A stretch of 54,159 nt of DNA from positions 187,015,220 through 187,069,378 of the forward strand of contig NC_068982.1 in NCBI RefSeq assembly GCF_001194135.2, read 5' to 3'. Below, one piece after another: positions 2,437 through 53,914 of the stretch. Each line of letters starts with the position of its first letter. Position 1 is the first letter of the stretch. The DNA comes from Octopus bimaculoides. Its lineage: Eukaryota. The notes under the pieces are model-generated. The model searched no databases and was not told where the DNA came from. It worked only from the letters and a program-made list of their open reading frames with translations. The position numbers and the translations under genes are program-made.

Positions 2437-2822
2437 CTTTCCGTATTCCCGAGCGTCATACTAATATATACTTTTGTTATTTACACCACCTGTCCTCGTC
2501 TGTTGTTATTTTTTGTATATTCTCCCATATATATATATATATATATANNNNNNNNNNNNNNNNNNNNNNNNNNNNNNNNNNNNNNNNNNNNNNNNNNNNN
2601 NNNNNNNNNNNNNNNNNNNNNNNNNNNNNNNNNNNNNNNNNNNNNNNNNNNNNNNNNNNNNNNNNNNNNATATATATGTGTGTGTGTGTATATGACAGTG
2701 ATTTGGTTTTGACTAATTTCTTATAATTTGTACACAATTTTGTGTGATTATAGTTTGAAATATTGATAAAGTATTTTTTTGTTTCTTGTATTCATTTCAT
2801 TTTTGATAGAGTTTTCCTCACA

Positions 2823-3053
2823 ATGAATAAATTACCTGGAATGGGCGAGAATAACTGCCCTGTTGTGAGTACAAGTCAGATGATGGCTTTGAACCAGCCA
2901 CCAGCGGGTCTTCGACCTGTCATTACAACGAGTCAAGTGAACCCTGCAATGTCTGTGTCCCCAGCAGAGAGCAAGGTCCTTGACAAACGGCGACTCCAGG
3001 AACTTGTGAAGGAAGTCGATCCTTTGGAACAGCTGGATGAAGATGTAGAAGAG
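2823..3053 (+). CDS. TAF12: TFIID subunit 12, coding exon 1
   Basis: MNKLPG...KVLDKRRLQELVKEVDPLEQLDEDVEE, the start of the TAF12 histone fold; donor GAG|gtaggt, phase 0. Confidence 0.95.
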
Positions 3054-3190
3054 GTAGGTGAAGTTTGCTTTGTAACCACACAGCTCCTGGTTCAATCCCA
3101 CCTGTTAGATGCTGTGGGGCATTTTGGCTCAGCTCTTTTGGCATTGCTGACTTCCTTGACTGTAGATGTCTTAATATATCTCTCTTTTGA

Positions 3191-3620
3191 GGCTGTGAAC
3201 TAGCAGAAAAGTTAGCTTGCCAGGCAAAATGCTTAGTGGCATTTCATTCATCTCTACGTCCTGAGTTCAAATTCTGCTATGGTTGACTTGGCTTTTTATC
3301 CTTTTGGGGTCGATACGGTATGTACCAGTTGAGCAATAACGTCGATATAATTGACTTATCTCCTCCTCCAAAATTGCTGTTTTTGTCCCAAAATCTGAAA
3401 CCAATATTTCTCACATTTAAGGCACCGAGATGGTGGAACTGTTAGCAAGCTGGGCAAAATGTTTTGTCACATTTCATTCATCTTTGCATCCTGAGTTCAA
3501 ATTCTGCTCAGGTTGACTTGGCTTTTCATCCTTTCAGAGTTGATAAAAGGGGTATCAATGAAACACAGGGGTCAGTGTAATCAACTTAGTCCCTGGCGTT
3601 GTACCAAAGTTTGAAATCAC
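3191..3620 (+). mobile_element. Two tandem diverged family A SINEs
   Basis: Two successive ctgagttcaaattctgct..ggttgacttggcttttcatcctt units. Confidence 0.7.
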
Positions 3621-6150: not shown

Positions 6151-6600
6151 GTATGGAGGTTTATCTTTGGCTAGGTATTTCTCCCACAGCTGTCTTACCA
6201 GAAATATAGCACAAACCCAAGCTGCATCTCATCTAAACTGACTCTCTCCCTAATTAATTGGGCTACAACCCTCTCCGTGACTTTCATTACCTGATCCAAC
6301 AGTTTGATACCTCTGTAATTATTTCTGTCTAAAGCATCACCTTTACCTTTGTAGTAGTTGACTATGGTGCTGCTACACCAGTCATTAGGTATGACTCCTT
6401 CATGTATCACCCGGTTGACTATTCGGGTGACTATTCTATAGCCGACACTGCCTGATATTTTGAGCATCTCTGCGGTGATTCCTGATGGGCTGGGGACTTT
6501 CCCTGTCTTCATACTCTCAATTGCGTTATCTACCAAGGCACAGCCAATTCGGATAGCTGGTCCCTCTGTTGGTTCGGCATTCGGCAGGCTCATTTTTGCC
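6151..6600 (-). mobile_element. RTE-clade non-LTR retrotransposon reverse transcriptase fragment (degenerate)
   Basis: MKTGKVPSPSGITAEML...IPNDW..STIV..YKGKGDALDRNNYRGIKLL...DEMQLGF, then after a break LVRQLWEKYLAK; typical RTE RT N-terminal blocks. Confidence 0.88.
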
Positions 6601-6958
6601 ACAAATGAGACTGATGCTAGGTTTTTTTTAAAAATAAATACTGGGATCGATTTGTTCAACTAAAAATTTTTCAAGGCGGGTGCCCCAGCATGGCCGTTGT
6701 CTAAACCTGAAACGAGTAAAAGAAAGATATATACAAAATGTAGACAAACATACACAAGTTCCCTCTTAAGCGAGACACTTCAGGGGAGGTAACTAATGTT
6801 TCAACATTGTGGTCACAGCTCACAATTACTTAAACATCGTCGTATTTGGATAATTAAGCTTCATCAATCCGGAGTGACATATAACATATATATAACAAAA
6901 ATGACATATTTTAGAAAATTCTGGGGATGATGATGATGACTGAGAAATTGTGTTATTG

Positions 6959-6993
<35 letters not shown>

Positions 6994-7777
6994 TAGGCTG
7001 TGTGGTAAGTAGCTTGCTTACGGACCACATGGTTCCGGGTTCAGTCCTACTGCGTGGCACCTTCGGCAAGTGTCTTCTACTATAGCCTCGGGCCAACTAA
7101 AGCCTTGTGAGTGGATTTGGTAGACAGAAACTGAAAGAAGCCCNNNNNNNNNNNNNNNNNNNNNNNNNNNNNNNNNNNNNNNNNNNNNNNNNNNNNNNNN
7201 NNNNNNNNNNNNNNNNNNNNNNNNNNNNNNNNNNNNNNNNNNNNNNNNNNNNNNNNNNNNNNNNNNNNNNNNNNNNNNNNNNNNNNNNNNNNNNNNNNNN
7301 NNNNNNNNNNNNNNNNNNNNNNNNNNNNNNNNNNNNNNNNNNNNNNNNNNNNNNNNNNNNNNNNNNNNNNNNNNNNNNNNNNNNNNNNNNNNNNNNNNNN
7401 NNNNNNNNNNNNNNNNNNNNNNNNNNNNNNNNNNNNNNNNNNNNNNNNNNNNNNNNNNNNNNNNNNNNNNNNNNNNNNNNNNNNNNNNNNNNNNNNNNNN
7501 NNNNNNNNNNNNNNNNNNNNNNNNNNNNNNNNNNNNNNNNNNNNNNNNNNNNNNNNNNNNNNNNNNNNNNNNNNNNNNNNNNNNNNNNNNNNNNNNNNNN
7601 NNNNNNNNNNNNNNNNNNNNNNNNNNNNNNNNNNGGGTCGATCTAATTGACTAGCCCCTCTCCCCCAAAAGTTCGGGCCTTGTGCCTAGCATAGAAACGA
7701 TTATTTAGTATTTTATCTATTTGTGGAAGAAATCACTTCTTTTCCATACGTTTAACTGTCTGTTTTGATCTCTTTAG

Positions 7778-11760: not shown

Positions 11761-12609
11761 CAATCATATTGAATGAAGGAATGGGCAGACATCTTTAAGC
11801 ATCTGCAACTGAGATGCATTTCACAGTGTCANNNNNNNNNNNNNNNNNNNNNNNNNNNNNNNNNNNNNNNNNNNNNNNNNNNNNNNNNNNNNNNNNNNNN
11901 NNNNNNNNNNNNNNNNNNNNNNNNNNNNNNNNNNNNNNNNNNNNNNNNNNNNNNNNNNNNNNNNNNNNNNNNNNNNNNNNNNNNNNNNNNNNNNNNNNNN
12001 NNNNNNNNNNNNNNNNNNNNNNNNNNNNNNNNNNNNNNNNNNNNNNNNNNNNNNNNNNNNNNNNNNNNNNNNNNNNNNNNNNNNNNNNNNNNNNNNNNNN
12101 NNNNNNNNNNNNNNNNNNNNNNNNNNNNNNNNNNNNNNNNNNNNNNNNNNNNNNNNNNNNNNNNNNNNNNNNNNNNNNNNNNNNNNNNNNNNNNNNNNNN
12201 NNNNNNNNNNNNNNNNNNNNNNNNNNNNNNNNNNNNNNNNNNNNNNNNNNNNNNNNNNNNNNNNNNNNNNNNNNNNNNNNNNNNNNNNNNNNNNNNNNNN
12301 NNNNNNNNNNNNNNNNNNNNNNNNNNNNNNNNNNNNNNNNNNNNNNNNNNNNNNNNNNNNNNNNNNNNNNNNNNNNNNNNNNGGAATAGTTATTTGATGC
12401 TGAAAGTGACGTTGAATTTGAAGGATTTGAATAAATGTTTTTGCTATTGCTTTTGTAACTCCTAGTGATAAATATGTAAAGGCAATTTACGTAATATTTA
12501 TTTTTCACTGAAGTTATTACTGTTATTTCTTTATTTTCTGCAAGCAAAGTGAACACAAAACAGCTACACGTTTGCATTATGTTATGTATACAATAATAAT
12601 AAAGGACGT

Positions 12610-15729: not shown

Positions 15730-16260
15730 CTAGCAGAAATACCCATCGTTGATCAGGTAATTACATTTACTGTTTCTCGGGAGCCACATTCAAAGTATTA
15801 TCATATATATAATTTACTCCGCCTGTTCCTACGTTAAGTTGACCATGTAAAAAGCATGGTTGTTTAACTTGCAAACCAGCAACTTCTATTATTTGGCCCT
15901 GAGTTTTATTAATGCTCATGGCAAAAGAAAGTGGGATAGGAAACTGTGACCGCTTAAATTGGAATGGGACATTAAATGGTATAACTGGTATGTGAGGAAT
16001 GAAGATGGTGTCACCTTTACCACAACCAGTGAGAATATTTGCCTCAATACAGTTCCTCATAAGTTTGTGCACAATTAGTGTTGTACCATTGCATAATTTT
16101 TGTTGAGACAAATTAGGCAATAATATAATAGTTTCCCCTGAACCAGGTACTTTCATTTTGCTAGAGAAAGAAAGAGACAGAATTTCGATTTTATATATAT
16201 AGAAAAAACATAATAGCTTCCCCTGAACCATTTACTTTCATTTTGCTAGACAAATAGATA
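15730..16260 (-). mobile_element. Helitron 3' end with degenerate PIF1-like helicase fragment
   Basis: LCNGTTL...FQFKRSQFPIPLSFAMSINKTQGQ..AGL...PCFLHGQL (helicase motifs V-VI); minus-strand terminus cctgatcaacgatgggtatttctgCTAG|T, a decayed hairpin plus CTAG. Confidence 0.85.
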
Positions 16261-19460: not shown

Positions 19461-20993
19461 GTCTACCTAGACGCCCTTCCTAGTACCAACACTTAATAAA
19501 AGAGGAATCTTTGTAAGTGCTTATACACAATAATATTTTTACATTGGCCATGGTGGCAAGCTGATAGAAACGTTAGCATGTTGGGCGAAATGCTTAGAGT
19601 TCAAATTCCGCCGAGGTCGACTTTGCTTTTCATCCTTTCGGGGTTGATAAATTAAGTACCAGTTGAATACTGGGTTCGATCTAAAGTCTTCTGTCTGCGT
19701 CGTTGGCCTTTCTCTCTGTTGATCACGGCAATTATAAAATATACTTTGCTGAAGAGGGTTAATAATAATAGAACACATCCACAGTTGTCTCCCATACTTC
19801 TTAGAATAATTTAAACAATACTATTCGTTTCTAATGTTTTTTTTCCTCATCGTTGATAATTTTTAATAAGCATTTACCTGTAATTTTAGTAATTTACAAT
19901 GTTAAATTGGAATCACCTTGAAAAGAAAAAAGTTAAATAGTAATACATCCTTTTCTTCTTTATTTCTCTTTTATTGTTCAGTTCTTGTGTTTTATTCCAA
20001 GAGTGTACTTCTAGCCTTCATTGCTGTCTTTCTTCACTTGACTTAAAGATGACTTTCTGTTCCCTCTTAACCTTTCCTGACAAGCGGTAGTGCACATGAG
20101 CACTAATATACAACAAGCTCTGTTATTATTTCCATACAAAAGATTTCTACACATGAATTACAGGAAAAGCTGGAAGCCAGTGTGTCGAGGAAAATATATT
20201 GGCGGACAATAAAAATATTTATTTCTCCTCTAGGCACAAAGCCTGAAATTTTTTTTTTTGGTGGGGGAGCAGTCGATTAGATTGACTCAGTATGCAGCTG
20301 GTACTTAATTTATCGAGCCTGAAAGGATGAAAGGTAAAGTCGACCTTGNNNNNNNNNNNNNNNNNNNNNNNNNNNNNNNNNNNNNNNNNNNNNNNNNNNN
20401 NNNNNNNNNNNNNNNNNNNNNNNNNNNNNNNNNNNNNNNNNNNNNNNNNNNNNNNNNNNNNNNNNNNNNNNNNNNNNNNNNNNNNNNNNNNNNNNNNNNN
20501 NNNNNNNNNNNNNNNNNNNNNNNNNNNNNNNNNNNNNNNNNNNNNNNNNNNNNNNNNNNNNNNNNNNNNNNNNNNNNNNNNNNNNNNNNNNNNNNNNNNN
20601 NNNNNNNNNNNNNNNNNNNNNNNNNNNNNNNNNNNNNNNNNNNNNNNNNNNNNNNNNNNNNNNNNNNNNNNNNNNNNNNNNNNNNNNNNNNNNNNNNNNN
20701 NNNNNNNNNNNNNNNNNNNNNNNNNNNNNNNNNNNNNNNNNNNNNNNNNNNNNNNNNNNNNNNNNNNNNNNNNNNNNNNNNNNNNNNNNNNNNNNNNNNN
20801 NNNNNNNNNNNNNNNNNNNNNNNNNNNNNNNNNNNNNNNNNNNNNNNNNNNNNNNNNNNNNNNNNNNNNNNNNNNNNNNNNNNNNNNNNNNNNNNNNNNN
20901 NNNNNNNNNNNNNNNNNNNNNNNNNNNNNNNNNNNNNNNNNNNNNNNNNNNNNNNNNNNNNNNNNNNNNNNNNNNNNNNNNNNNNNNNNNNNA

Positions 20994-21380
20994 ACTTTTG
21001 GGGATGGAGCCAGTCGATTAGATCGACTCCAATACACAACTGGTACTTTATTTATCGACCCCGAAAGTATGAAAGGCAAAGTCGACTTCGGCGGAATTCG
21101 AACTCAGAACACGAAGACAGACGAAATACCGCTAAGCATTTCGTCCGGCGCGCTAAAGTTTCTTATTTCTTTACTACCCACAGAGGGGACAAACAAGGAC
21201 AGACAAACGGATTAAGTCGATTACATCAACCCCAGTGCGTAACTGGTACTTATTTAATGGACCCCGAAAGGATGAAAGGCAAAGTCGACCTCGGCGGAAT
21301 TTGAACTCAGAACGTAGCGGCAGACGAAATACCGCTAAGCATCTTGCCCGGCGTGCTAAAGTTTCTGCCAACTCGCCGCT
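20994..21380 (-). mobile_element. Two tandem, well-preserved family A SINEs
   Basis: Reverse complement of 152-390; CpGs largely intact, so probably young copies. Confidence 0.8.
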
Positions 21381-28260: not shown

Positions 28261-28563
28261 GTAAGGATTAAGTTTTTATTTCACCAATGTTGTAGATTAA
28301 AAGATTATTTGTGAATTTGCTTTCTCTTTTGAGACAAGTCAACTTTGTCAGTCAGTTTCAGACAGCAATGATAATAAATCTGACTAAACACCATGTTTTT
28401 CTTTTACATCATAAATTCTAAAGCCATATAACTGCATGTTATATATGTGTGAGTGAAGACACATGGCTTAATAGTTAGCGTTTTTAACTCACAATCATAA
28501 GGTTGTGAGTTCGATTTCTGGTGGGGTGTTGTGTCCTTGTGCAAGACCTTTTATTTCATAATA

Positions 28564-28746
28564 CAGTTCTATATTCAAGAGATGAGGAATTATTTACACT
28601 ATTTACATTTGATGGATATTTGTCCTCATCTTGTTTGTTGTTAACACAACGTTTTGGCTGATATACCCTCCAGCCTTCATCAGGTGTCTTGGGGATATTT
28701 CGAACCTGGGTTCTCATTCCTAAGGTATTTTTAAGTGTTGTTGTTG

Positions 28747-28792
<46 letters not shown>

Positions 28793-28896
28793 CCATGGGC
28801 ATATGGTGTAGTGGTATATGCCCACGGGCATATGGCTTAGTGGTTAAGAGTGCAGGCTACTAACCCCAAGATTCCGAGTTCGATTCCAGGCAGTGA

Positions 28897-28931
<35 letters not shown>

Positions 28932-29070
28932 TCGAATAATACCTTAGGAATGAGAACTCAGCTTCAAAATTTCCCCAAGACACCTGGCAAAGGATGGAGA
29001 ATATATCAGCTGAAACGAGTTAACAAGAAACAAGATGAGGACAAATATCCATCAAATGTAAATAATGTAC
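28564..29070. mobile_element. Family D palindromic tRNA-head/hammerhead element, locus 1
   Basis: Minus arm 28564-28791 (hammerhead with G12A), centre atatgccc-ac-gggcatat at 28816-28833, plus arm to about 29070 (core decayed). Confidence 0.8.
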
Positions 29071-29706
29071 TTTTATATCATGTCGCTCCAATCCACTCAG
29101 CTGTCACAAATGAGTTAAACGATGATGATGATGAAGGGTAAGTGCCTCTTAATCTTGTACTTTCTCCTGGTATTCGTGGCAGGTTTGTACTCTGTTAAAG
29201 ACTCTTTCTTTTGGTACTCTGTTAGAGTCTCCCAGCTATGAAAATTCATAAATTCCAGATTTTCCCCACTATCAGTGGATTGACTTCAACTTTCATATAA
29301 TTAATTAAGGGTTATTTCAGTAACTTGCAAGGCAAGACAAAACCCCCTTGACTGGCGGCGGGGGTAGTATTGAGGGAGTTGGCTTTGTACCAGTTGACGA
29401 GAGGTTCAAAGAATAATAGAGGGATAGATGTAGGTGTCTTGCTGTAGAGGAGATACAAAGGTAGACCAGTTGGAATAAAAGAGAGAGAGAGAGAGAGAGA
29501 AGATGGTGGTGAAGAATACTCCGTGCTTCCTTTCCTCAATCACTTTTGATCATTGATTTTATTTAAATTTTAGTCACCTTTTTTATTGACTTCAGTTCAG
29601 AACAATTGACATTTCCTTTTCGTTTTCTGCTCAGCCCTTCATCAACATTATCGTTAACCCCATTGCTACATCAGTTCCCTTACAAAATTGCATTTCTGTC
29701 TTTCAG

Positions 29707-29812: not shown

Positions 29813-29828
29813 GTAAGCAATCTTCCTC

Positions 29829-30226
29829 CTGCTCTATATTTAAGAGATGAGGAATTATGTACATTATTTACATTATTTACATTAGACGGATATTTGTCCT
29901 CATCTTGTTTGTTGTTAACACAACGTTTCGGCTGATATACCCTCCAGCCTTCATCAGGTGTCTTGGGGAAATTTCGAACTTGGGTTCTCATTCCTGAAGT
30001 ATTTTTCGATGTTATTATTATTGTTCAGGTCACTGCTTGGAATCAAACTTGGAATCTTTGGGTTAGTAGCCCACACTCTTAACCACTTTGCCATATGCTT
30101 GTGGGCATATACCTTAGGAATGAGAACCTAGGTTCAAAATTTCCCCAAAGCACCTGATGAAGGCTGGAGGGTATATCAGCCGAAACGTCAAATGTAAATA
30201 ATGTAAATAATGTAAATAATGTAAAT
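29829..30226. mobile_element. Family D palindromic element, locus 2
   Basis: Complete minus arm 29829-30100, centre atatgctt-gt-gggcatat at 30093-30110, internally deleted plus arm. Confidence 0.8.
29917..29962 (-). ncRNA. Candidate minimal type I hammerhead ribozyme (best-preserved family D copy)
   Basis: gacac CTGATGA A ggctg gagggtatat cagcc GAAAC GTT gtgtt; core nucleotides present, stems I and II pair; cleavage untested. Confidence 0.7.
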
Positions 30227-30302
30227 CTTACTCCTGTTTTATATTTTCTCTTCATTTCACTGCAGACTTTTTATTTATCTATTCAACTATTCTGATGCTT
30301 AA

Positions 30303-30860: not shown

Positions 30861-31106
30861 TCTGTTGAAGGTTCTAGAAAATTAATCAAATGTTATAAAA
30901 AGCTGTGATTTTGAACTCTTAAACAGAACAACCTCAGGGGTTACACAGAACTCGCATTCGTATTATTGGTTATTTTCACCACCACCTGACATAATATTGT
31001 GTTTTCTACAATGATGAATTAATATTCCAAACCCACTAAAATTCCTTGACTATTTGCCATTTTAAAATCCTATGATTCTTTACCTTTCTTATTTGTTTCT
31101 TTGCAG

Positions 31107-31219
31107 TGTCTCCACTTTTTGTAATTGAATTTCTGCACAGAGTCTTTGATACATTTGAAGATTATTTTGCCGAGTGTACAGAATCAACAATCAAAGAACA
31201 TTATGTTATAGTATATGAG
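31107..31219 (+). CDS. AP3M1: AP-3 complex subunit mu, exon 4
   Basis: tgcag|(V)SPLFVIEFLHRVFDTFEDYFAECTESTIKEHYVIVYE|gtatgg; 113 nt, phase 1 to 0. Confidence 0.96.
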
Positions 31220-32096
31220 GTATGGTACACGTATATAGTCAATGTCATGCTATAGTATATGAGGTAACTATAAATCATAATATAGTGTATATCTGGCAGC
31301 TGACTTGGTAGACACCCACAAGATTATCCTTCATCTTTCAACAACAACCATGGGCATCTTTTTGAATTCCATAAATTTAACACTCTTGGACATGCTAACA
31401 AAATCAAAAAACAACATAGCTCCCATCAATTTTGGAAACATTTTTTCAGTCAGAATTACTGAAGCATGAAATAAACTCTCTGCATCGGTTGTTAGTGATC
31501 AGTACACCGTGTCTTTTAAAATTTCCATGTTTCTAGAAATTCATGTAGAAACTTTGCCAGATCAGATTGGAGCCTGGTGCAGCCTTCTGGCTCACCAGTC
31601 CTCAGTCAAACCGTCCAACCCATGCCAGCATGGAAAGCGGACATTAAACAATGATGATGAAGATTATTATTATTATTATTATTATTGAGTGAGAGAGCAG
31701 TGCATGCCATCAAAGTGAGTCTGAGGTGAAATATACATAGCGCAGTATACCCATCCTGACTACTCATCTGATAAGGGTACACTGGGCACATGCATCACAA
31801 CTATGTGCGCGACATGGGGATCTTATATCAAGATAAACAGCGCATGGCCTTGCAGGTGGGGCCTAGTTTTAATTTTCTTCAGGTTGAATAGCCCATCCCA
31901 CTCAAAAGATCCCTGAATAAGGTTTGTTTATGGATGTTGAACGAAACACCCATGTTTCCAAAGGTAGATTATCCAAACCCCAAAGAATTCCTCTCAACAC
32001 ATAACTATGATGTCCCCCCCCCCACTACTTCTGGTTGTGATCAGAGATGATCTTCTTCTTCTTCTTCTTTATTCGTTGTTGTTGTTATTATTATTA

Positions 32097-32131
<35 letters not shown>

Positions 32132-32215
32132 CATTATTATGGTTCAGTTTTATAATTTAATGCAGTTGAATAATAATAATAATAATAATTATTATTATTA
32201 TTATTATTGTTTTAG

Positions 32216-32340
32216 CTTCTTGATGAAATGCTGGACAATGGCTTTCCATTGGCAGTAGAATCCAATGTTCTCAAGGAGCTGATTAAACCCCCCAACTTCC
32301 TGAGGACGATCACCGACACTGTCACTGGTAAATCTACTGG
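32216..32340 (+). CDS. AP3M1: AP-3 complex subunit mu, exon 5
   Basis: tttag|LLDEMLDNGFPLAVESNVLKELIKPPNFLRTITDTVTGKST GG|gtatgt; 125 nt, phase 0 to 2. Confidence 0.96.
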
Positions 32341-33069
32341 GTATGTATTGGCATTCTTCTCAACAAAATCTAATGGCTCTTGCAGATACACACACATGCA
32401 CATACGTGGACACACACACACACACACACACACACATTATATATATGTATATGCATATGTCTGCCTTCCATGCTGGGTGGTTTGACAGGATCTGATCAGC
32501 GAGAGAACTACATTGTACTCCAGTGTCTGTTTTGGTAGAGTTTTCCATGTTGTTTGAGGTACCCCTTGATGCAGTCCTCTGATCTGTCACGTCTTGACGG
32601 ACTATCTGACCCATGCCAGCACAGAATATGGACATTAAATGATGATGATGATGGTTGATTATTTCTAATGACATAAGAGTCTGACCGGTCACTATCAATT
32701 TGCTCCTGTCACAATTGAGATTTCAGGTTCTCGACTGTGACAAGAGTTCTTGGACCCTGTGCTACTGATTTCCTCTGCAAAATTGGGATAACTGCGGCCC
32801 ATCTGAGAAATGTGCCCCGCAAATGGGGTGCCTGTTTCAACAAGTGTTACTGGCTATTCTCTGCAGTAATGCCTTTGCCATCATGTCCACAAAGCATGGC
32901 TAAACACGCCATTTGTTTTGGGATGTACAACCTGTTACTACTTCCCTCCCCCCATCTTTTGCTGCTTAATTCCCCACTCCTACCAATTTTTCTTTTTCTT
33001 CATTTCCTTGGTGAGGTACTTATGATTTTTTTTTTTTTTTCTTGACAATTTGATCTTTTATATTTTTAA

Positions 33070-33288: not shown

Positions 33289-33464
33289 TTAAATGTTTTT
33301 CTTTTCTTTTCTTTCTGTGAAATTATGTTGTTAATAAAAATAAAGTTTACATGGTTCCGGATTCAGTCCCACTGCGTGGTACCCTGGGCAAGTGTCTTCT
33401 ACAATAACTGGACCAACCAAAGCCTTGTGAGTGGATTTGGTAGAAGGAAACTGAAAGAAGCATG

Positions 33465-33504
<40 letters not shown>

Positions 33505-33506
<2 letters not shown>

Positions 33507-33709
33507 GCATTTCTACCAATGTATCTACTGCATTTCCTGCTCTCTCTGCCCTTCTCTATACATCGGGCAAACAGGACGCCGCTTGGCTGACCGGTTTGCA
33601 GAACACCTCTGAGACATCCAACTTGGCAATAACACCCTGGTCTCGTGCCATTTTCGCTTTACCAGTCACTCTTTGCAACTCCTGTCTGTGTTCAGATTGT
33701 CCTTGCACT
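33505..33709 (+). mobile_element. Penelope-like element GIY-YIG endonuclease fragment (pseudogenised)
   Basis: CISTNV/IYCISCSLCPSLYIGQTGRRLADRFAEHL*DIQLGNNTLVSCHF: CxxC-YIGQT-R...RF.EH signature with one frameshift and one stop. Confidence 0.8.
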
Positions 33710-34168
33710 GGGCTCCAGTCTTATCTGGCAGAGTTCCTACAGCTGGATGCCCTTCCTAACGCCAACACTCCAAAAGTGTAGTGGGTGCTTTTACGTGCCA
33801 CCGGCACGAAGTTCAGTCAGGTGGTACTGGCTACGGCCACGCTCGAAATGGTGTATTTTACGTGCCACCTGCACAGGAGCCAGTCCAGCAGCACTGGCAA
33901 TGATCTCGCTCATATATTAGTTTGTGTCTGTTTGTTCCCTCACCATTGCTTGATAACTGATGTTGATGTGTTTATGTCCCTGTAACCTAGTGGGTCAACA
34001 AAAGAGACCAATAGAATAAGTACCAGGTTTACAAAGAATAAGTCCAGGGGTCGATTTCCTTGAATAAAAGGCATTGCTCCAGCATGGCCACAGTCAAAAT
34101 GACTGAACCAAGTAAAAGAATATAAAAATAAAAGAAATTCTAATTTGCTTCTTGTTTACATTTACCAG

Positions 34169-34328
34169 AGTCAGTGGAATACTGCCAACAGGACAGCTTT
34201 CTAACATTCCCTGGAGAAGGACAGGTGTCAAATATACCAATAACGAGGCGTATTTTGATGTCATTGAGGAAATTGATGCCATCCTTGACAAATCGGGTGC
34301 AACAGTCTTTGCAGAAATCCAAGGATAT
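34169..34328 (+). CDS. AP3M1: AP-3 complex subunit mu, exon 6
   Basis: accag|(G)VSGILPTGQLSNIPWRRTGVKYTNNEAYFDVIEEIDAILDKSGATVFAEIQGY|gtgagt; 160 nt, phase 2 to 0. Confidence 0.97.
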
Positions 34329-34359
34329 GTGAGTAAAAAATAATTCGTCATCATCATCA

Positions 34360-35015
34360 TCATCATTATCGTCATTGTCGTTTAATGTCTGTTTTCCATA
34401 CTGGCATGGGTTGGACAGTTTGATTGGGGACTGGCAAGCCAGGAGGTCTCACCAGGCTCCAATCTGATCTGGCAATGTTTCTACAGCTCGATGTCCTTCC
34501 TAACGCCAACCATTCCAAAGTGCTTTTCACATGCCACTGGCACAGGAGCCAGTCAAGTGGCACTGGCATTGGCCATTTTTGGATGGTCGTTTTTATGTGC
34601 TACCGGCACAGGAGCCAGTTGGGGCAGTGGGGCTGGTATCGACCACATACAGATGGTGTTTTTTATGTGCCACTGGCACAACAAGCAAGTCAGGCAGCTT
34701 TGGCAGCAACCCACACACGAATGAATGGTGCTTATCGCGTGCTGCCAGCACTGGTAATGGCCACAACTACAATTTCCATTTGATTGTGATTTGATTTGAT
34801 TTTGATTTACTTGACTCAATAGGTCTCCTCAAGCACAGCGTGTCACCCAACGTTTCAAAGGTACATTTTAAATGGGCTGGTTATGCAACACTGGTGTAGG
34901 CTAAGGCTGTGATCTCACTTTCCTTGCCGGGTCTTCTCAATCACAGCATATCTCCAAAGGTCTCAATCTTTCGTCATTGTCTCTGTGAGGCCCAACATTT
35001 GAAGGTCATGCTTCA
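34360..35015 (-). mobile_element. 5'-truncated RTE LINE (family C) with C-terminal coding remnant
   Basis: Minus strand VKHDLQMLGLTETMTKD*DLWRYAVIEKT at about 34925-35015, then the 3' UTR and (GAT)n tail near 34350. Confidence 0.72.
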
Positions 35016-35492
35016 CATTTGATGGATATTTGTCCTCATCTTGTTTGTTGTTAACACAACGTTTCAGCTGATATACTTTCCAGCCTTCATCAGGTGTCTT
35101 GGGGAAATTTCAAACCTGGGTTCTCATTCCTGAGGTGTTTTTCATCATCATCATCATCATTATTCAGGCCACTGCGTGGAATCGAACTCGGAATCTTGGG
35201 GTTAGCAGCCTATGCTCTTAACCACTACGCCATATGCCCATGGGTTAAGGACGTGAGCTACTAACCCCAAGATTCCAAATTCAATTCCAGGTAGTGACCT
35301 GAATAATAATAATAATAACATTGAAAAATACCTCAGGAATGAGAACCCAGGTTCGATATTTCCCCAAGACACCTGATGAAGGCTGGAAAGTATATCAGCT
35401 GAAACGTTGTGTTAACAACAAACAAGATGAGGACAAATATCCGTCAAATATAAATAATGTACATAATTCCTCATCTCTTAAATATAGAACTG
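35016..35492. mobile_element. Family D palindromic element, locus 3
   Basis: Minus arm 35016-35239, centre atatgccc-at-ggg, plus arm to 35492; hammerhead folds with intact cores at 35053-35098 (-) and 35368-35413 (+). Confidence 0.82.
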
Positions 35493-35739
35493 CAAGGATA
35501 CAGTACTTTGTTGTGCAACCATGATATATCATCAAGTATATTAAAGTTTTACAAGGCAATATTGTGCCTTACTTTTGTGTTAGCAGTGCAATAGTCTCAT
35601 TTTTATGTTCATCTCTATAGAATTTAGATTCAGCCCTGAAAGTTACGATGGTCTGTATTTGAATATGAATACAATGGTTCAGAGCCAGTGTAATAATTAC
35701 ATATTAATTATCTTATCAATATTGTTGTTATATTTCCAG

Positions 35740-35853
35740 ATTGATTGTTTGATCAAGCTTAGCGGCATGCCTGACCTAACATTGTCTTTCATGAATCCAC
35801 GCTTGTTAGATGATGTTAGTTTCCATCCGTGTGTTCGTTTTAAGAGATGGGAA
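35740..35853 (+). CDS. AP3M1: AP-3 complex subunit mu, exon 7
   Basis: tccag|IDCLIKLSGMPDLTLSFMNPRLLDDVSFHPCVRFKRWE|gtaagt; 114 nt, phase 0. Confidence 0.97.
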
Positions 35854-36429
35854 GTAAGTATATCCTGTCCTATTAATATCTCTCTTCTTTATTTACCTCT
35901 GTCTTCTGTTGTAACTCTGGGAAATATTCCATTCTCTTCAGATATGCCAACAGCACTTTACTATCTTCATCACATAAACCAGAATAATTGCTCTTAAAGA
36001 CATTTGTCCATAGTAGCAATAACTCCAGCATAATGGAAATAATTCTTGACTGGTATAATTACCTGAATAGTTCTGTCAGAATGCAATTAGAAATTATTGG
36101 TTAATTCATCAAACTTTATTGAATATTATAGTGATATTTAATAATGCCAGTCCCAGGAGGTAGATTTTAGATGAAATAATTATAAAGATATGACACTCAT
36201 CTTTCATGTTTCTGAAGTCGTCCGGATTAACAACTTTACTCTCCATGAGTTTTGAGGGTGCCTTGTAAGGCCAATATTGGCATAAAATCCACAGTTACAG
36301 TGTAGTGGTGATGAAAACTACCTGCATCAACTTGCTATAAAAGCAGGTAGCAATTTCACCTTGTCCTTATTCTTAGTGCAAGTTTTGAAGAGTGCAGTTC
36401 GATTTTAACAGTTATTTTTCAAAGCTTTA

Positions 36430-37174
36430 ATGGAAGTGACAAAGGAGCATATTCGGCAGATTTTGCTTCATGAGTTCAAGAAAGGCAACACTGTAATGGA
36501 AAGTGCAATGAATATTGATGCAGTATATGGGGATCGGACAATAAGCATAAGCCAGTGTCAACAGTGGTTCCAGAAATTCCAAGCTGGAAACTACAGCCTA
36601 GAAGATGGGCCTTGTTCTGGAAGCTCTGTAGAGCTTGATGAGGATGTCCTGCAAACCCTGGTGAAAGAAAATCCCATAGTAACTGTTGAGGAACCGGTAG
36701 AAAAGCTTGGATTTAGTTATTCAGCTGTTCATCAGCACCTGCATGCTATCGGAAAAATGACCATCTTTGGTTTCAAGGCGAAAGGTGTTCTTCCATCAGG
36801 ATAATGCTTGGCCACATACAGCAAGGATGACATTCCAAAGGCCAGAGCAGTTTGAATGGGAAACGATGCCTCACCCACCATATTCACCGGACATTGCCCC
36901 ACCTGATTATCATTTATTCTGCAGTTTTCAAAATGATTTGGATGGAAAAAATATGAATTCTGTTGACAAGGTCAGAACAGTACTGGAGGAGTATTTTTTG
37001 TTATGGATGAGTGAATTTTGGAAGAGGGGCCTTGCAAGTCTACTAGAGAGATGGAAGAGCACTGGACAAAATGAAGGAGAGTATATTTTAGATTAAAAAA
37101 GAACTCTGTTTATCTTAATTTTGAAAAATATAAGAAGTATAAAAACCCCACATTATTTATGGGATGATCCAATA
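36430..37174 (+). mobile_element. Internally deleted mariner (D34D) transposase pseudogene
   Basis: N-terminal HTH (HIRQILLHEF...WFQKFQAGNYSLED) fused out of frame to HQDNA...PHPPYSPDIAPPDY with 34 residues between the two Ds; WVPHEL and first-D region missing; TIR-like right end ...ttatttatgggatgatccaaTA. Confidence 0.88.
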
Positions 37175-40519: not shown

Positions 40520-40990
40520 ACTCTGGCAGGATTTGAACTCAGAATGTAAACAAACTTAATTTAATTTTGGTTTTAAATTTTGGTGGGGGCGCTAGTTGAT
40601 TATATCAGCCTTAGTATACAACTGGTACTTATTTTACCAGCCCCAAAGAGATGAGAGGCAGAGTTGACCTCGGTAGAATTTGAACTCTGAATGTAAAGAT
40701 AGACAAAATGGGATTTAAGCATTTTGCCTGCTGTACTAATGGTTCTGCCAGCTTGCTGCCTTAGACTTAACCAAATATTGGTTTCAAATTTTGGCACAAG
40801 GCCAGCAAGTTTGTGGGGTGGAGTAGGTCAATTACATCGACCCTAGTGCTCAACTGGTACTTATTTTATCGACCTTGAAAGCACGAAAGGCAAAGTTGAT
40901 TTTGGCAGAATTTGAACTGAGAACATAAAAGACTTAACCAAATATTGCATGGCATTTTGTCCCATATTTTACCAATTCTGACAGCTTGTT
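40520..40990 (-). mobile_element. Tandem diverged family A SINEs
   Basis: caactggtacttattttat...gaaaggcaaagttga...ggcagaatttgaact, twice. Confidence 0.7.
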
Positions 40991-48363: not shown

Positions 48364-50564
48364 CCTATATTATATATATATATAGCAATAATTATAACAA
48401 TATAGAATATGGAAACTTGTTCATCATACGGCATATTTTTATTGCTGTTGCAATCTGCATATGTTTCCACTGTGCAAAACACTCGCAGTTGCAACTTTCT
48501 GTGCAGCTTCTTCAGGATCTGTCCATTTGGCTTGTTTCAAAACGAACTGAATACAGTTTGTTGTTTGTTGGTTAGGGTTCAGTGAGAGGTAGGGGGAAGT
48601 TGTTTTGAAACTGAAATCTGATCTGTTTGTAAGCTTGTGTGGTTGACCCCTGCTTCACGCATACTGCTGTCCAGAGTCAGGGTTCGATCTAACTAGGTCA
48701 AGGTTAATATTACTGTTTTGGATGGCCTGTTTCTGTATTGTAGTAGTCAGATACCTACCAACCTTATATTCAAGTGTATTGCTTGTCATGTAATGTTTTT
48801 AGTTATTCATATATTTACGGGCTGTGTTGTCTATGTTTGGTAGTATCAAGTGGGTGGAACATATGCTAGGCTGATCATAGTAACAGGTGGAAACACGTGT
48901 AGGTCGTAACAGTCATAAAAATATGCCATATGTAATTATAAAATAAGAGGAAAAAATGTTGAGGATGAACAAGTCTCCATGTTCTCTATCGTTATAATTA
49001 TTTCTAATATACACTCCAGATTATATTACCATCCAGTGAATCAATCGAAGGGATTTACAGAGTCATGACAACTAATAGTTGTCATAAATGTTAAATGCTA
49101 ATCAATGCAGTTAGCCATAACCTGGAACATAACTGAGAGCCACCATAGTATCTGGCTGGATAATATATCTTTCCAAACTCACATATATATATATATATAT
49201 ATANNNNNNNNNNNNNNNNNNNNNNNNNNNNNNNNNNNNNNNNNNNNNNNNNNNNNNNNNNNNNNNNNNNNNNNNNNNNNNNNNNNNNNNNNNNNNNNNN
49301 NNNNNNNNNNNNNNNNNNNNNNNNNNNNNNNNNNNNNNNNNNNNNNNNNNNNATATATGTATCTCAGACCGGGCTATTTTGTCTTGCAAGTTACTTGTTG
49401 ACCTCACTGGTGCCAGTGTCACGAAAACAGCACCCAGTACATTTTGTAAAGTGGTTGGCATGAAGATGGTAACCGGACGTAAAAACCATGCCAAAGCAGA
49501 CTTTGTGATTCAATGCAGTCCTCCAACTTGTCAGATCTTGTTGAATTATCCATTCTATACCAGCATGGAGAGACAAATATTAAATGATGATGATGCTGAT
49601 ATCAGTCACTTTGCATTATCTTGAATGTACACGACTATCTTGGAATGCTGAATACTTCTGTCACACCTCTTATCCTGTATCCTTTTTATAAACTATCATT
49701 CACTGCCTCTATCACTTGAGCTTATCCCTCTGTAAAGAGGCTGGCCAGCAACCAGAGACATTCGGTTTTGAGTTCCTTCATTATGTTGAGGACATAACTA
49801 AGTGCTTGTGCCATGAAAAACAAACACCAAATACTTTTTGTAAAGTGGTTGGAGCTAGGAAGGGCATCCAGCTGTAGATACCATGATTAATATGAAACGC
49901 GAGGGAGATTAGGTCCCCTAACTCATTTAGGGGAACAGCAGTACTCCTGAATACATTCTGACTCTGTGATGAGCTATCCAACCCATGCCAGTATGGAAAG
50001 CAGATGTAAAATGATAACGATTCATCATTATCATCATCATTATCAATATCATCATCATTTAACATCTGCTTTCCATGCTGGCATGGGTTGAATGGTTTGA
50101 CAGGATCTGGTGAACCAGCTTTAGCATGGTTTCTACAACTAGATGTCCTACCTGACATCAACTACTTTTATATAGTGTACTGGGTGCTTTTTCTTTTTTG
50201 TGTCACTGGCACTGTTTTCAAATGGCTGCAAAGCAAGCTTCCTGATGACACAGCCATGCATGTCCCTCCTGTAAATACCATTGCTCACAGCAGCTACATT
50301 CTCTAAACAGCCACCCATCTAAATACTAACCAGGCTCAAATTTGTTAAACTTTGATGATTAGATGAATTCCAGTGTTTTTGCTGTGATATGTTTCTATGC
50401 TAAATATAAAATATTTACTCCATATTGGATGATCAAATAATCAGTGACATGTTTAATTTTGGAAGCAGAAATGATCAATTTTTAATTCAATTTAATTCAT
50501 GTGATTTTTTAGTTAGAAAATGTTTTTTTTTAAAGAGAGAATCTTTGACTTGCTTATTTTGCAG

Positions 50565-51026: not shown

Positions 51027-52629
51027 ATTATTGGTCATACATAAATAGTGTGTGTGTCTTGTTTATATTGCCATTTTGCTGTGGGATATCATCCTAGGAA
51101 AGCTCCCTACACAATGCCAAGTTATTAAACATTTAATGTTCCAGATAGATGAGACAATTCACCCAAAATGATTGAGAATGGTAGATATTGATATTTGAAA
51201 ACTATTTTTTTAGCTCCTCAGTATTATTTACTGAATTCACCTTGAAACGTATTGAATCCTCAGCCTGGGGCTTATATGCAAAGAGTGTGAAATTTATTTC
51301 CTCATATGCTGTGACATAGCGCATGTGAAACAAAATTAAATTTTGAATTGAGGTGAATTGATCACTTCGGGCGAGTTGTCTTGCTTGTCTGGAACCAACA
51401 CTTGGTGCCATATGGAGAGCTTTCCCGGAACGCTGTCCTGCTGCAAATTGGCATATAAATAAACCAGGCACGTACCATCAGTAATTACTCAGAGTAGGCA
51501 GTCGGTGACCTTTATGTAGTGAAGCAAAGGTGTGCGACTGAGTTGAAGGCAGATTTACTTCTGCCTTTATAGCACATAAAGAAAATGGTGTTGTAGGAAT
51601 GTACACAGCATGTGTACTACTGCAGTCCTATAGCATAGCTTAAATACTGAGATAGAAAGGCAGGGGAGAATTATGCCTACCTAATCTACAAAAAAAATAT
51701 ATATATTTTGTATTTTATGCATAGTAATCATACTTATCTTCATAATTTTATTGAATTTGGTGCATATTTTGCCATAAAAGGAAAATGTTGTTATCAGTTT
51801 ATTTTATTCAAGGTAGGCACTGCCTATCTTGCCTACCTATCTAGGCAGCACATCCCTGAAATAGACACATACACTATGTATGTGTGACTGGTAATTTATT
51901 AATTATTAGTGCTGCTTGCAATTCAAAATTTAAAATACTATTGTTTGTGGGAAGTTAAATTTGTTCAATCATCAATGATACAAAATACTTTGTTTAAATT
52001 TTATTTAACACTTTTGTTACATTTTTTTCTTAAAATATGCTGTCTTCGTTTCAGTTAATTTAAAAAAATAATGCCTGTTATTATTAAGCCAGTGTTTTGA
52101 ATATTAATCAGCATAGAATTTTGATTGAAGTTCTTTTGATTGTGATTACTTAAAAAATAAGAAAATGAGCTGTATCGTTGAACCCGGAGCAATCTCAGCC
52201 AGGTTGGTATCAAAAGGTTAAAGGCTGATCAAAGATTATTATTTTAGGGCAAATTTAAGGATAACAAGAGAACACTTACTGATAGAGAGACTTAATAGTG
52301 AGAGTAGAATAAAATTTATTGGCGGGGGTCATTCTTACTGGCCCTTTGGCAAGTGTGTGTGTGTGTGTATGTGTTTTGTAAAGGTGCATCAGTATCATTC
52401 AAGTGGTGTGGTTCAGTTCCAGTCTTATGTGAGAAACATGTCTAGTCACAGAAAAATATTACCTTGCTTGCAAACTGGTGAGGTAAAGGTTGGTGACAGG
52501 AAGAGCATCCAGCTGTAGAAAAATCTACCTTAACAAATTCCGTCTGGCCTGTGTGAGCAAGGAAAAGTGAATGTTAAATGATGATGATGTAGAAGATATC
52601 CAGAGAAACTGAGATATAACTAGAACACT

Positions 52630-52907
52630 ATAGCATAGTGGTTAAGAGTGTAGGCTACTAACTCCAAGTTTCTGAGTTCGATTCCAGGCAGTGACCTGAA
52701 TAATAATAATAATAATAATAATAACATTGAAAAATACCTTAGGAATGAGAACCCAGGTTCGAAATTTCCCCAAAACACCTGATGAAGGCTGGAGGGTTTA
52801 TCAACCGAAACATTGTGTTAACAACAAACAAGATGAGGACAAATATACGTCAAATGTAAATAATGTAAATAATGCACATAATTCCTCATCTCTTAAATAT
52901 AGAACTG
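52630..52907 (+). mobile_element. Family D element, single arm (locus 4)
   Basis: Truncated tRNA head, (AAT)n, hammerhead fold at 52774-52819 with stem II and III mismatches, tail ...aaatatagaactg|TA. Confidence 0.8.
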
Positions 52908-53229
52908 TATTAACTAGAACACTTGTCAACACATTTATAAAACTCAGATACCATGTTTGGCCAACATAACAAGTAAGCATTATATACCAATATGATATAT
53001 TGCATACCATCTATGCTGTGTGATATGACAAAATATATTGTATACTACACACTATACCATACCACCAGATACCATGCGATACTGTACAATTCACCCTTCC
53101 ATTGTGTGCCATTTGATACTGTATAATATTCCATGTGATACTATGCAATATATGATTCCATTATCTGCTATGTGATATTCCATGATATACCTGGCCATTT
53201 TCTTAACGGTCTTCAAATTCTCATTTCAG

Positions 53230-53388
53230 ATTGAAAATGTTGTGGTTGAAGTGTTATTTCCAAAATCAATCCTAAATGTGACCCTCACCCCAAACCAGGG
53301 AAAATATTCATTTGACCCTGTTACCAAGATGATGACCTGGGATGTTGGCAAAATTGACCCGACCAAACTTCCAAATATCAAAGGAACA
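53230..53388 (+). CDS. AP3M1: AP-3 complex subunit mu, exon 10 (gene continues beyond the window)
   Basis: ttcag|IENVVVEVLFPKSILNVTLTPNQGKYSFDPVTKMMTWDVGKIDPTKLPNIKGT|gtaagt; cumulative CDS 1071 nt = 357 codons, about 60 C-terminal residues still missing. Confidence 0.96.
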
Positions 53389-53914
53389 GTAAGTAATTGT
53401 TTTATGTGTAAAAAGGGCCAACGATTTCCATGTTGAGCAAGGCAGCAAGAAACTGTAGTGGCTGAACAGTGGAAGATCTTCAGAGAAGAAGCCCTCCCCC
53501 GACAAACTCATGCAAGTGTTTTGGTCCTTAACTCTGTCATGGGTGGTTGCTTGCTGCAGGTGAATGAAAATGTAATCCTAGAACTACATGTAGAAGTAAT
53601 TAACAAAACTAATGAACAATTAACAGAAAATTTATTTTCAGCACATAGTGGTTCCAATGTTGATCTTTGGATGAAAAATAAAAGCATCATTTGGACTCTA
53701 GGAGAGACAAAATACTAATAAAGCTGACCTGTCACAACTGGAAAATAAGTGACTCTATACTCTTTGTGACAAAATCTCTGTCTTCTATCTGCCATCAGCT
53801 GGTGGTCAATGAGAATGGAGACATCAAGTGGCTGTCTCAACATTCTGGGATTGCTACCAAAAACCATCTTTATATAGAGTGCCAGTTAGTAGTAATATAT
53901 ATATATATATATTC

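Follow-up and report, generated by a model that had tools for sequence, protein, structure and literature searches.

Which machinery multiplies a short interspersed nuclear element (SINE) that carries a ribozyme motif of the kind found in Penelope-like elements (PLEs)? This question is raised by a 54,159-nucleotide stretch of Octopus bimaculoides DNA (RefSeq assembly GCF_001194135.2, contig NC_068982.1, positions 187,015,220 to 187,069,378, forward strand), referred to below as the window, which contains a repeat family (family D) with a tRNA-like head followed by a minimal type I hammerhead motif. In textbooks, SINEs figure as parasites of long interspersed nuclear elements (LINEs). Family D is a tRNA-derived SINE-like retroposon that is old and abundant in the octopus, and its copying is probably owed to Penelope machinery and not to a LINE. 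A preliminary description of this DNA, made from its letters and open reading frames, had proposed a self-cleaving hybrid of SINE and retrozyme that uses Penelope-type machinery.

Based on blastn, nhmmer and MAFFT, exactly seven copies of the family (c1-c7) were defined within the 54-kb window, with no further fragments:

28560-28792, minus strand: copy c1, 5'-truncated, starting inside (AAT)n, with tail
28643-28688, minus strand: hammerhead of c1, carrying G12A, a CpG transition
28793-29069, plus strand: copy c2, with a complete 5' end, ending in the AATGTAAAT repeat without tail
about 28979-29021, plus strand: hammerhead of c2, decayed (CTGGCAA, and a 3-nt deletion at the cleavage site)
29832-30112, minus strand: copy c3, the full-length reference, 281 nt
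29917-29962, minus strand: minimal type I hammerhead motif of c3, 46 nt
30026-30100, minus strand: tRNA-derived head of c3, with A box TGGCAAAGTGG at about 30083-30093 and B box AAGTTTGATTCC at about 30051-30062
29832-29860, minus strand: 3' tail extension, ACATAATTCCTCATCTCTTAAATATAGAG, containing the 3' arm of the 9-bp hairpin AGATGAGGA/TCCTCATCT
30113-30226, plus strand: copy c4, the inverted 5'-truncated partner of c3, starting in the linker
35014-35237, minus strand: copy c5, 5' end complete minus the leader, 3' end at CAAATGT, no tail
35053-35098, minus strand: hammerhead of c5, intact, with G10.1-U11.1
35238-35492, plus strand: copy c6, inverted relative to its partner c5, 5'-truncated within the A box, with tail
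35368-35413, plus strand: hammerhead of c6, intact, with G10.1-U11.1
52629-52910, plus strand: copy c7, a solo insertion, slightly 5'-truncated, with tail
52774-52819, plus strand: hammerhead of c7, with a C-A mismatch in stem II and G16.2A (helix III)

The hammerhead is intact in c3, c5 and c6 and damaged in c1, c2, c4 and c7; in c4, an internal deletion after GAAACGT removes the 3' strand of stem I. The number of copies and the state of each agree with the preliminary description, as do the letters of the motif in c3: gacac CTGATGA a GGCTGG agggtata TCAGCC GAAAC GTT gtgtt. Helix I of this motif (GACAC/GUGUU) has 5 bp. Helix II (GGCUGG/UCAGCC), earlier given as 5-6 bp, does pair and comprises 6 bp if one G-U is counted, closing an 8-nt loop. 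The core (CUGAUGA, GAAA, A15.1, U16.1, U17) is complete in the consensus as well as in c3, c5 and c6, and c3 equals the seven-copy consensus throughout the hammerhead without any difference. All seven copies have a bulged A between positions 9 and 10.1, while the base of helix II is G10.1-C11.1 in the consensus and G-U in c2, c5 and c6. A palindromic C15.2-G16.2 directly follows GAAA; there is neither a loop 3 nor a helix III in the monomer. Cleavage of the c3 motif is predicted after GUU, and the hammerhead could be catalytic only as a dimer, with the ACGU of one molecule pairing with the ACGU of the other as helix III. Such a double hammerhead can be drawn without a pseudoknot, with helices I and III between the molecules and helix II within each. 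Just 3' of the predicted cleavage site (29905-29923, minus strand) lies GUUGUGUUAACAAC, which in the predicted fold forms a 5-bp local hairpin competing with helix I; it includes an 8-nt palindrome, UGUUAACA, that could mediate dimerisation.

Minimal hammerhead ribozymes (min-HHRs) were described by Cervera & de la Pena 2014 (PMC4209133) as type I hammerheads without helix III or loop 3 in the monomer, of which two copies pair via palindromic core-proximal nucleotides. The same study lists as hallmarks covariation, an unpaired nucleotide between 9 and 10.1, G10.1-C11.1, a palindromic 15.2-16.2 and a helix I of 4-5 bp, and it reports thousands of dispersed min-HHRs per genome, including dual min-HHRs about 100-700 bp apart on opposite strands. 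The octopus motif shares the type I topology, the dimer-only arrangement, the 5-bp helix I, the extra nucleotide between A9 and G10.1, the G10.1-C11.1 pair and the palindromic CG at 15.2-16.2, and it likewise occurs in many dispersed copies and in opposite-strand pairs a few hundred bp apart. Judged by its sequence, it is a minimal type I hammerhead of the PLE kind, as had been proposed, with every hallmark that Cervera & de la Pena list beyond their own descriptor except covariation. It differs from its PLE counterparts in being joined to a tRNA-derived RNA polymerase III (Pol III) head rather than being found in the pseudo-long terminal repeat (pseudo-LTR) of an element encoding a reverse transcriptase (RT), and its helix II has 6 bp compared to 7-8 bp in Schistosoma families.

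The motif is not expected by chance in a sequence of this composition. A simple core pattern gave 5 matches in the window against 0.14 expected. The full min-HHR descriptor (core, helices I and II each of at least 4 bp, optional bulge, palindromic 15.2/16.2, and UH), evaluated against dinucleotide-preserving shuffles of the window on both strands, matched c3, c5 and c6 only and found nothing in 200 shuffles; a relaxed version returned the same three matches and none in 100 shuffles. Since all copies share one ancestor, this is evidence for one non-chance event in the master sequence and not for several. Two motif-pattern scans of metagenomes and one of viral sequences gave 0 matches.

Regarding the element as a whole, the consensus measures about 290 nt, the discrete unit about 280 nt and the body about 175 nt. 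In c3, a 12-nt leader (GTATATGCCCAC) is followed by the tRNA-like head, (AAT)n, the linker, the hammerhead, a 3' hairpin with (AATGTAAAT)n and a tail of about 35 nt. The leader (12-13 nt across the family) corresponds, in inverted complement, to the first bases of the head, and c2 carries an additional 23-nt direct fragment of the head at its 5' end. The head of about 75 nt contains an A box (TGGCNNAGTGG) and a B box (AGTTCGATTCC) spaced by 43-44 nt, confirming the tRNA-like boxes noted before. Between (AAT)n and the hammerhead lies the linker of about 45 nt, and the 3' hairpin, predicted to have 9 bp (AGATGAGGA/TCCTCATCT) in accordance with the earlier observation, encloses (AATGTAAAT)n; the 3' terminal stretch of the consensus ends in ...CTTAAATATAGAACTGTAT. 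The tail is found in c1, c3, c6 and c7 and is absent from c2, c4 and c5. In line with the preliminary description, none of the seven copies contains a TTTT. The first TTTT follows 11-292 nt downstream where one is present within 400 nt, and there is none after c5. Together with target-site duplications (TSDs; 12/12, 11/12 and 9/10 matching positions) and 5' truncation of c1, c4, c6 and c7, the promoter boxes and the lack of an internal Pol III terminator identify a tRNA-derived SINE-like retroposon, which agrees with what had been suggested from the letters. No other sequence in the window shares the 3' module or tail.

Two further features of the element were noticed. The linker (29963-30010, minus strand) includes a second B-box-like stretch, CCCAGGTTCGAAATTTCC, closed by GGAA/UUCC, which could be a remnant of a second tRNA-like unit. 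Moreover, the head TATAGCATAGTGGTTAAGAG (52629-52650) and the tail motif TTCCTCATCT-T-AAA have what we take to be a resemblance to the mammalian MIR/CORE-SINE consensus; the CORE domain proper is not present in family D. An identity with the Ceph-domain was rejected, as that domain consists of CORE plus the 5' untranslated region (UTR) of an RTE and has a different sequence.

The arrangement of the copies bears most directly on the machinery. Six of the seven form three head-to-head units (c1/c2, c3/c4 and c5/c6), with computed inverted repeats of 117 nt, 80 nt (91% complementary) and 217 nt (88% complementary, with a 19-nt spacer), respectively. In simulations placing and orienting seven copies at random, at least three such pairs arose with P = 2.5e-6. 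Two of the units and the solo copy are flanked by TSDs:

28548-28559: left TSD of the c1/c2 unit, CTTTTATTTCAT, matching the right one at 11 of 12 positions
29070-29081: right TSD of the c1/c2 unit, CTTTTATATCAT
29822-29831: left TSD of the c3/c4 unit, CTTCCTCCTG, matching the right one at 9 of 10 positions, or at 12 of 13 counting the preceding AAT
30227-30236: right TSD of the c3/c4 unit, CTTACTCCTG
52617-52628 and 52911-52922: perfect 12-bp TSD of c7, TAACTAGAACAC

Within each unit, one arm (c2, c3 and c5) reaches the 5' end of the family, and the other is 5'-truncated at a point that differs from unit to unit, lying within (AAT)n for c1, the linker for c4 and the A box for c6. The inner junctions differ between all three units. 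The last approximately 35 nt (ACATAATTCCTCATCTCTTAAATATAGAACTGTAT) are present on exactly one arm per unit, while its counterpart breaks off within or at the AATGTAAAT repeat, which in c4 reads (AATGTAAAT)4. This tail lies beyond the repeat and directly abuts the TSD in c1, c3 and c7. Based on the TSDs around whole units, the unequal arms and the one-sided tail, each unit stems from a single integration that placed two arms in inverted orientation. The arms of one unit are 0.79-0.87 identical, the same as any pair of copies; this fits old insertions, as is to be expected if every copy goes back to a similar master and has diverged by some 7% since then, and is uninformative. Another tRNA-derived SINE family (…GCTGGCAGTATTGTTAGCAC…TGGGTTCAAATTCC…; at 225, 3264, 3494, 13142, 14256, 15271, 17492, 17777, 19598, 21297, 40529-40908 and 43987) serves as an internal control: it is more numerous than family D, accounts for most of the 15 B-box matches, and occurs only solo or in direct orientation, never head-to-head.

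This insertion pattern resembles that of PLEs, for which Craig et al. 2021 described a high degree of 5' truncation, inverted 5'-truncated copies adjoining the 5' end of a fuller copy, tail extensions of 30-40 bp at one end only, and partial head-to-tail tandems forming pseudo-LTRs. An inverted truncated arm is found in three of the four insertion events of family D, and a one-sided tail of about 35 nt in all three units. These TSD-flanked, one-sided-tail units had not been seen in the preliminary description and lend independent support to its proposal of Penelope-type machinery. Family D differs from PLE insertions in the lack of head-to-tail tandems: in the window there are no tandem copies of this kind (partial tandems or pseudo-LTRs), and the only direct duplication is the 23-nt head fragment in c2.

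Taken together, the account we favour, with appreciable reserve, is that family D is a tRNA-derived SINE whose body, including the min-HHR, derives from a PLE, that Pol III transcribes it, and that the RT and GIY-YIG endonuclease of a PLE copy it through two-ended priming. Under this model, Pol III would transcribe the element into its downstream flank, and the PLE RT/GIY-YIG endonuclease would recognise the PLE-derived 3' module and make a staggered break of about 10-13 bp. Both DNA ends could then prime cDNA synthesis on the SINE RNA, which would give rise to a head-to-head unit with one complete arm, one 5'-truncated inverted arm and a tail at one end. The hammerhead itself would have been inherited from the pseudo-LTR module of a PLE.

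Several results weigh against this account. The search for PLE open reading frames (ORFs) in the window found no RT or GIY-YIG motif; the sharing of the 3' module with a PLE is putative. A TSD was also looked for around the c5/c6 unit and none was found. ARAGORN reported no tRNA gene, and the Rfam tRNA model gave no match at E<=10 on 121 nt; the case for a tRNA origin of the head is therefore limited to the two promoter boxes and the distance between them. Tails of LINE-dependent SINEs, too, typically finish in a short repeat like (AATGTAAAT)n. Of the hammerhead model searches that had been suggested, the custom descriptor recovers the three intact copies while Rfam hammerhead models match none, neither at the gathering score in the whole window nor at E<=10 in 9 kb or 101 nt; such a miss is no surprise for a motif that lacks a helix III hairpin, yet it counts as a failed test. 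The double-hammerhead dimer, at -22.3 kcal/mol, is feasible but is not the structure of minimum free energy (best dimer -29.2, two monomers -25.2). In the predicted full-length fold, helix II and the 3' hairpin form, helix I is displaced by the local hairpin GUUGU/ACAAC, and the overall z-score is only -1.1. Such unfavourable predicted folding fits the poor in vitro cleavage published for min-HHRs (PMC4209133) and is not decisive for activity in cells.

Sequence conservation likewise gives the account no help. Divergence from the seven-copy consensus is 4.6% for the 13 core nucleotides and 6.8% for the whole 46-nt motif, compared to 8.0% for the rest of the element, 5.8% for the 46 nt upstream and 3.1% for the 46 nt downstream; among the seven copies, the hammerhead core is thus no better conserved than its flanks. 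No compensatory changes were found in the helices of these seven decaying copies, a small sample: 0 pairs changed on both sides, 2 changed on one side and 2 cells are broken. The earlier statement that variants keep pairing is accordingly no evidence of selection, as C11.1U and the G-to-A change at the end of helix I are both one-sided transitions and the one in stem II falls at a CpG; C11.1U, G12A and G16.2A are all at CpG sites. The copies in the window are dead and decay neutrally at about 7% from the consensus, so that the conservation test has no power either way.

Among other explanations, an ordinary tRNA-SINE of the stringent type that depends on CR1, L2, RTE or a similar LINE partner has to be taken seriously, although we regard it as unlikely. 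The true 3' end would then be the hairpin plus (AATGTAAAT)n, the hammerhead-like segment a captured relic without a role, and the inverted pairs the product of twin-priming-like events or of a preference for insertion beside existing copies. Arms c2, c4 and c5 indeed terminate within or at the 9-mer repeat, which numbers from 1.5 to 4 copies, and tails of hairpin plus microsatellite are usual with CR1/L2-type partners. The window holds LINE RT fragments (ORF 6195-6659), and LINEs are the most abundant order among the transposable elements (TEs) annotated for O. vulgaris, at 12.9% of the genome. Against it stand the 35-nt tail beyond the repeat, abutting the TSD in c1, c3 and c7, and the head-to-head form that three insertions out of four have taken, a form never seen for the window's other SINE family. 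The 3' module is shared by nothing else in the window, and the motif bears hallmarks specific to PLE min-HHRs. Classical twin priming, which inverts a different and more 5' part of the RNA, was rejected because here both arms share the same 3' module. Alternatively, the copies might not be SINEs but solo pseudo-LTRs or heavily 5'-truncated autonomous PLEs, whose pseudo-LTR contains a tRNA-like stretch by chance. The architecture fits PLE insertions, which are mostly 5'-truncated, and dispersed single min-HHRs have been interpreted as probably related to truncated PLEs (PMC4209133). We nevertheless give this little credence: unlike random truncation, the 5' end is practically the same in all three units and lies at the tRNA-like head, with the 12-nt leader kept in c2 and c3 and c5 starting about 10 nt inside the leader, just upstream of the head. 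Moreover, no coding sequence adjoins any copy, and A and B boxes of correct consensus and spacing without an internal TTTT fit a Pol III unit.

The retrozyme half of the proposed hybrid fares worse still. An animal non-LTR retrozyme would be a tandem element whose hammerhead-excised monomer circularises and is then reverse-transcribed. A type I hammerhead that needs dimers, the absence of coding capacity and a length of a few hundred nt would suit it, and Li, Clavereau & Pollet (2026 preprint) argue that animal retrozymes are non-autonomous PLE derivatives. Yet tandem repeats and circular RNAs define animal non-LTR retrozymes, which have no tRNA head (Cervera & de la Pena 2020), and the window holds no head-to-tail tandem copies of family D. 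Furthermore, its genomic ends lie at the tRNA head and the tail and not at the cleavage site, and described retrozymes lack a Pol III head and possess canonical hammerheads that make loop-loop contacts, which makes this origin very improbable. What family D does share with retrozymes is that it is non-coding, hammerhead-bearing, and probably non-autonomous and dependent on PLE machinery. Least credible of all, in our view, is a foldback or miniature inverted-repeat (MITE)-type DNA transposon with long terminal inverted repeats, or a hammerhead resemblance due to chance. Superficially the units do look like inverted repeats of 80-217 nt with short flanking direct repeats, but the two arms of a unit end differently (tail versus no tail), the inner junctions vary in all three units and the solo copy c7 has a perfect 12-bp TSD of its own, on which grounds a foldback origin was rejected. 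Chance is excluded at the level of the window by the 0/200 shuffles, and a rough, inferred rather than computed per-site estimate of about 3e-10 would leave only a few occurrences expected in a whole 2.7-Gb genome.

At the level of the element, the closest precedent for family D is the Schistosoma pair Sm-alpha/Sj-alpha, Pol III SINE-like elements with a hammerhead (Ferbeyre 1998 and Laha 2000, as summarised in PMC6765202). Copies of Sm-alpha are often arrayed in tandem, and in vitro cleavage by its hammerhead, in cis or in trans, sets monomers free (PMC6765202). Schistosome hammerheads are canonical according to de la Pena's group (PMC4209133), while another paper calls related candidates minimal, with a very short stem III. 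Likened by description and not by sequence, both are short non-autonomous retroposons in which a Pol III promoter precedes a hammerhead on the same strand; the octopus family differs in its loopless min-HHR, its dispersed copies and its inverted units in PLE style. Short non-autonomous Penelope elements have also been noted in butterflies, and in the giant squid genome paper 235 matches to Rfam Hammerhead_1 are given without comment. The general ideas of Pol III SINE-like hammerheads, dispersed PLE min-HHRs and non-autonomous PLE derivatives are therefore already published, and family D is an extension and not a new principle.

Octopus tRNA-derived SINEs named OK, OR1 and OR2 were reportedly described by Ohshima & Okada in 1994. 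Compared by description only, family D is likewise an octopus tRNA-derived SINE, as are those and the elements annotated as 'tRNA-Core/tRNA-Deu'. The accessible part of the octopus TE literature contains no mention of a hammerhead or PLE partner for any SINE, and the accessible part of the wider literature describes no SINE that combines a tRNA head, a PLE min-HHR and insertion in PLE style, and no hammerheads in octopus SINEs. The novelty claimed earlier thus stands insofar as no octopus description was found, and it is smaller than had been thought, given that Sm-alpha/Sj-alpha and dispersed min-HHRs precede it.

If true, the favoured account would extend the partnership of SINEs to the third class of retrotransposons and would offer an abundant, short and easily assayed substrate for studying the role of PLE hammerheads. 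As integration in PLE style would place both inverted arms in one step, every insertion would be a ready-made RNA hairpin inside introns, and intronic double-stranded RNA (dsRNA) would arise directly from a family that inserts in inverted pairs, in an animal known for extreme RNA editing. An exceptional dsRNA potential and A-to-I hyper-editing have been reported for Octopus bimaculoides (PMC5625713). In the O. vulgaris genome, the SINE share is 11.6%, and Octopus harbours PLEs that have recently been active (PMC13282606); SINEs account for about 40% of octopus TE content. It is a speculative and rather doubtful possibility that a major octopus SINE is the first documented tRNA-headed PLE-dependent SINE, that its paired arms seed intronic hairpins of about 100-220 bp and thereby much of the dsRNA load and hyper-editing of O. 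bimaculoides, and that the hammerhead is a conserved handle to the PLE partner.

The genomic neighbourhood of the copies includes parts of two genes and fragments of other mobile elements:

2763-3203, plus strand: TAF12-like exon (Pfam TFIID_20kDa, below the cut-off)
6195-6659, minus strand: LINE-type RT fragment (…NYRGIKLL…)
15767-16231, minus strand: Pif1/Helitron-like helicase fragment
31104-31222, 32214-32334, 34166-34334, 35733-35856 and 53296-53391, plus strand: five exons of the AP-3 complex mu subunit gene
36430-36804, plus strand: ORF of mariner/Mos1 type with a helix-turn-helix (Pfam HTH_48, E=3.6e-18)

Copies c5, c6 and c7 are intronic in the AP-3 mu gene, with the c5/c6 unit in the 1.4-kb intron directly before the exon at 35733, and c1-c4 lie just upstream of the first mapped exon. 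Searches with the AP-3 mu exon and with the concatenated exons matched only other taxa, and the three Logan loci are free of the SINE. Another tRNA-derived SINE (28460-28559 and 29082-29130) hosts the c1/c2 unit; it has a B box GAGTTCGATTTC and then continues as ...GTGTCCTTGTGCAAGACCTTTTATTTCAT before the insertion and GTCGCTCCAATCCACTCAGCTG after it. This host SINE is presumably CORE-SINE-like. An empty-site check for the c1/c2 unit found no second copy of the host SINE in the window. Runs of N, seen as X-runs in the ORF translations, mark assembly gaps at about 7140-7640, 11830-12400, 20340-21040, 26650 and 49250-49400, and some repeats may accordingly be missing from the window. The (TG)n and (TA)n microsatellites at 32377-32460 and 33448-33580 produced weak, sub-threshold Rfam matches to miRNA and pestivirus-UTR models, which are low-complexity artefacts; other low-scoring Rfam matches (miRNA, snoRNA, CRISPR) were set aside as due to chance or microsatellites.

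The open frame running through the body of the SINE has two protein matches among 5.8 billion, both in Octopus bimaculoides, one of them in a 132-kb gene. Protein P0002 (O. bimaculoides, GCA_001194135.2), annotated as 'dystrobrevin beta isoform X1' and 94 aa long, has an N-terminus beginning MPMGIWHSGEGWRVYQPKCCVNNKQDEDKYPSK, which is the translation of the SINE head and hammerhead region. This SINE-derived N-terminus suggests that a copy of the family was exonised, or mis-annotated, as a first exon.

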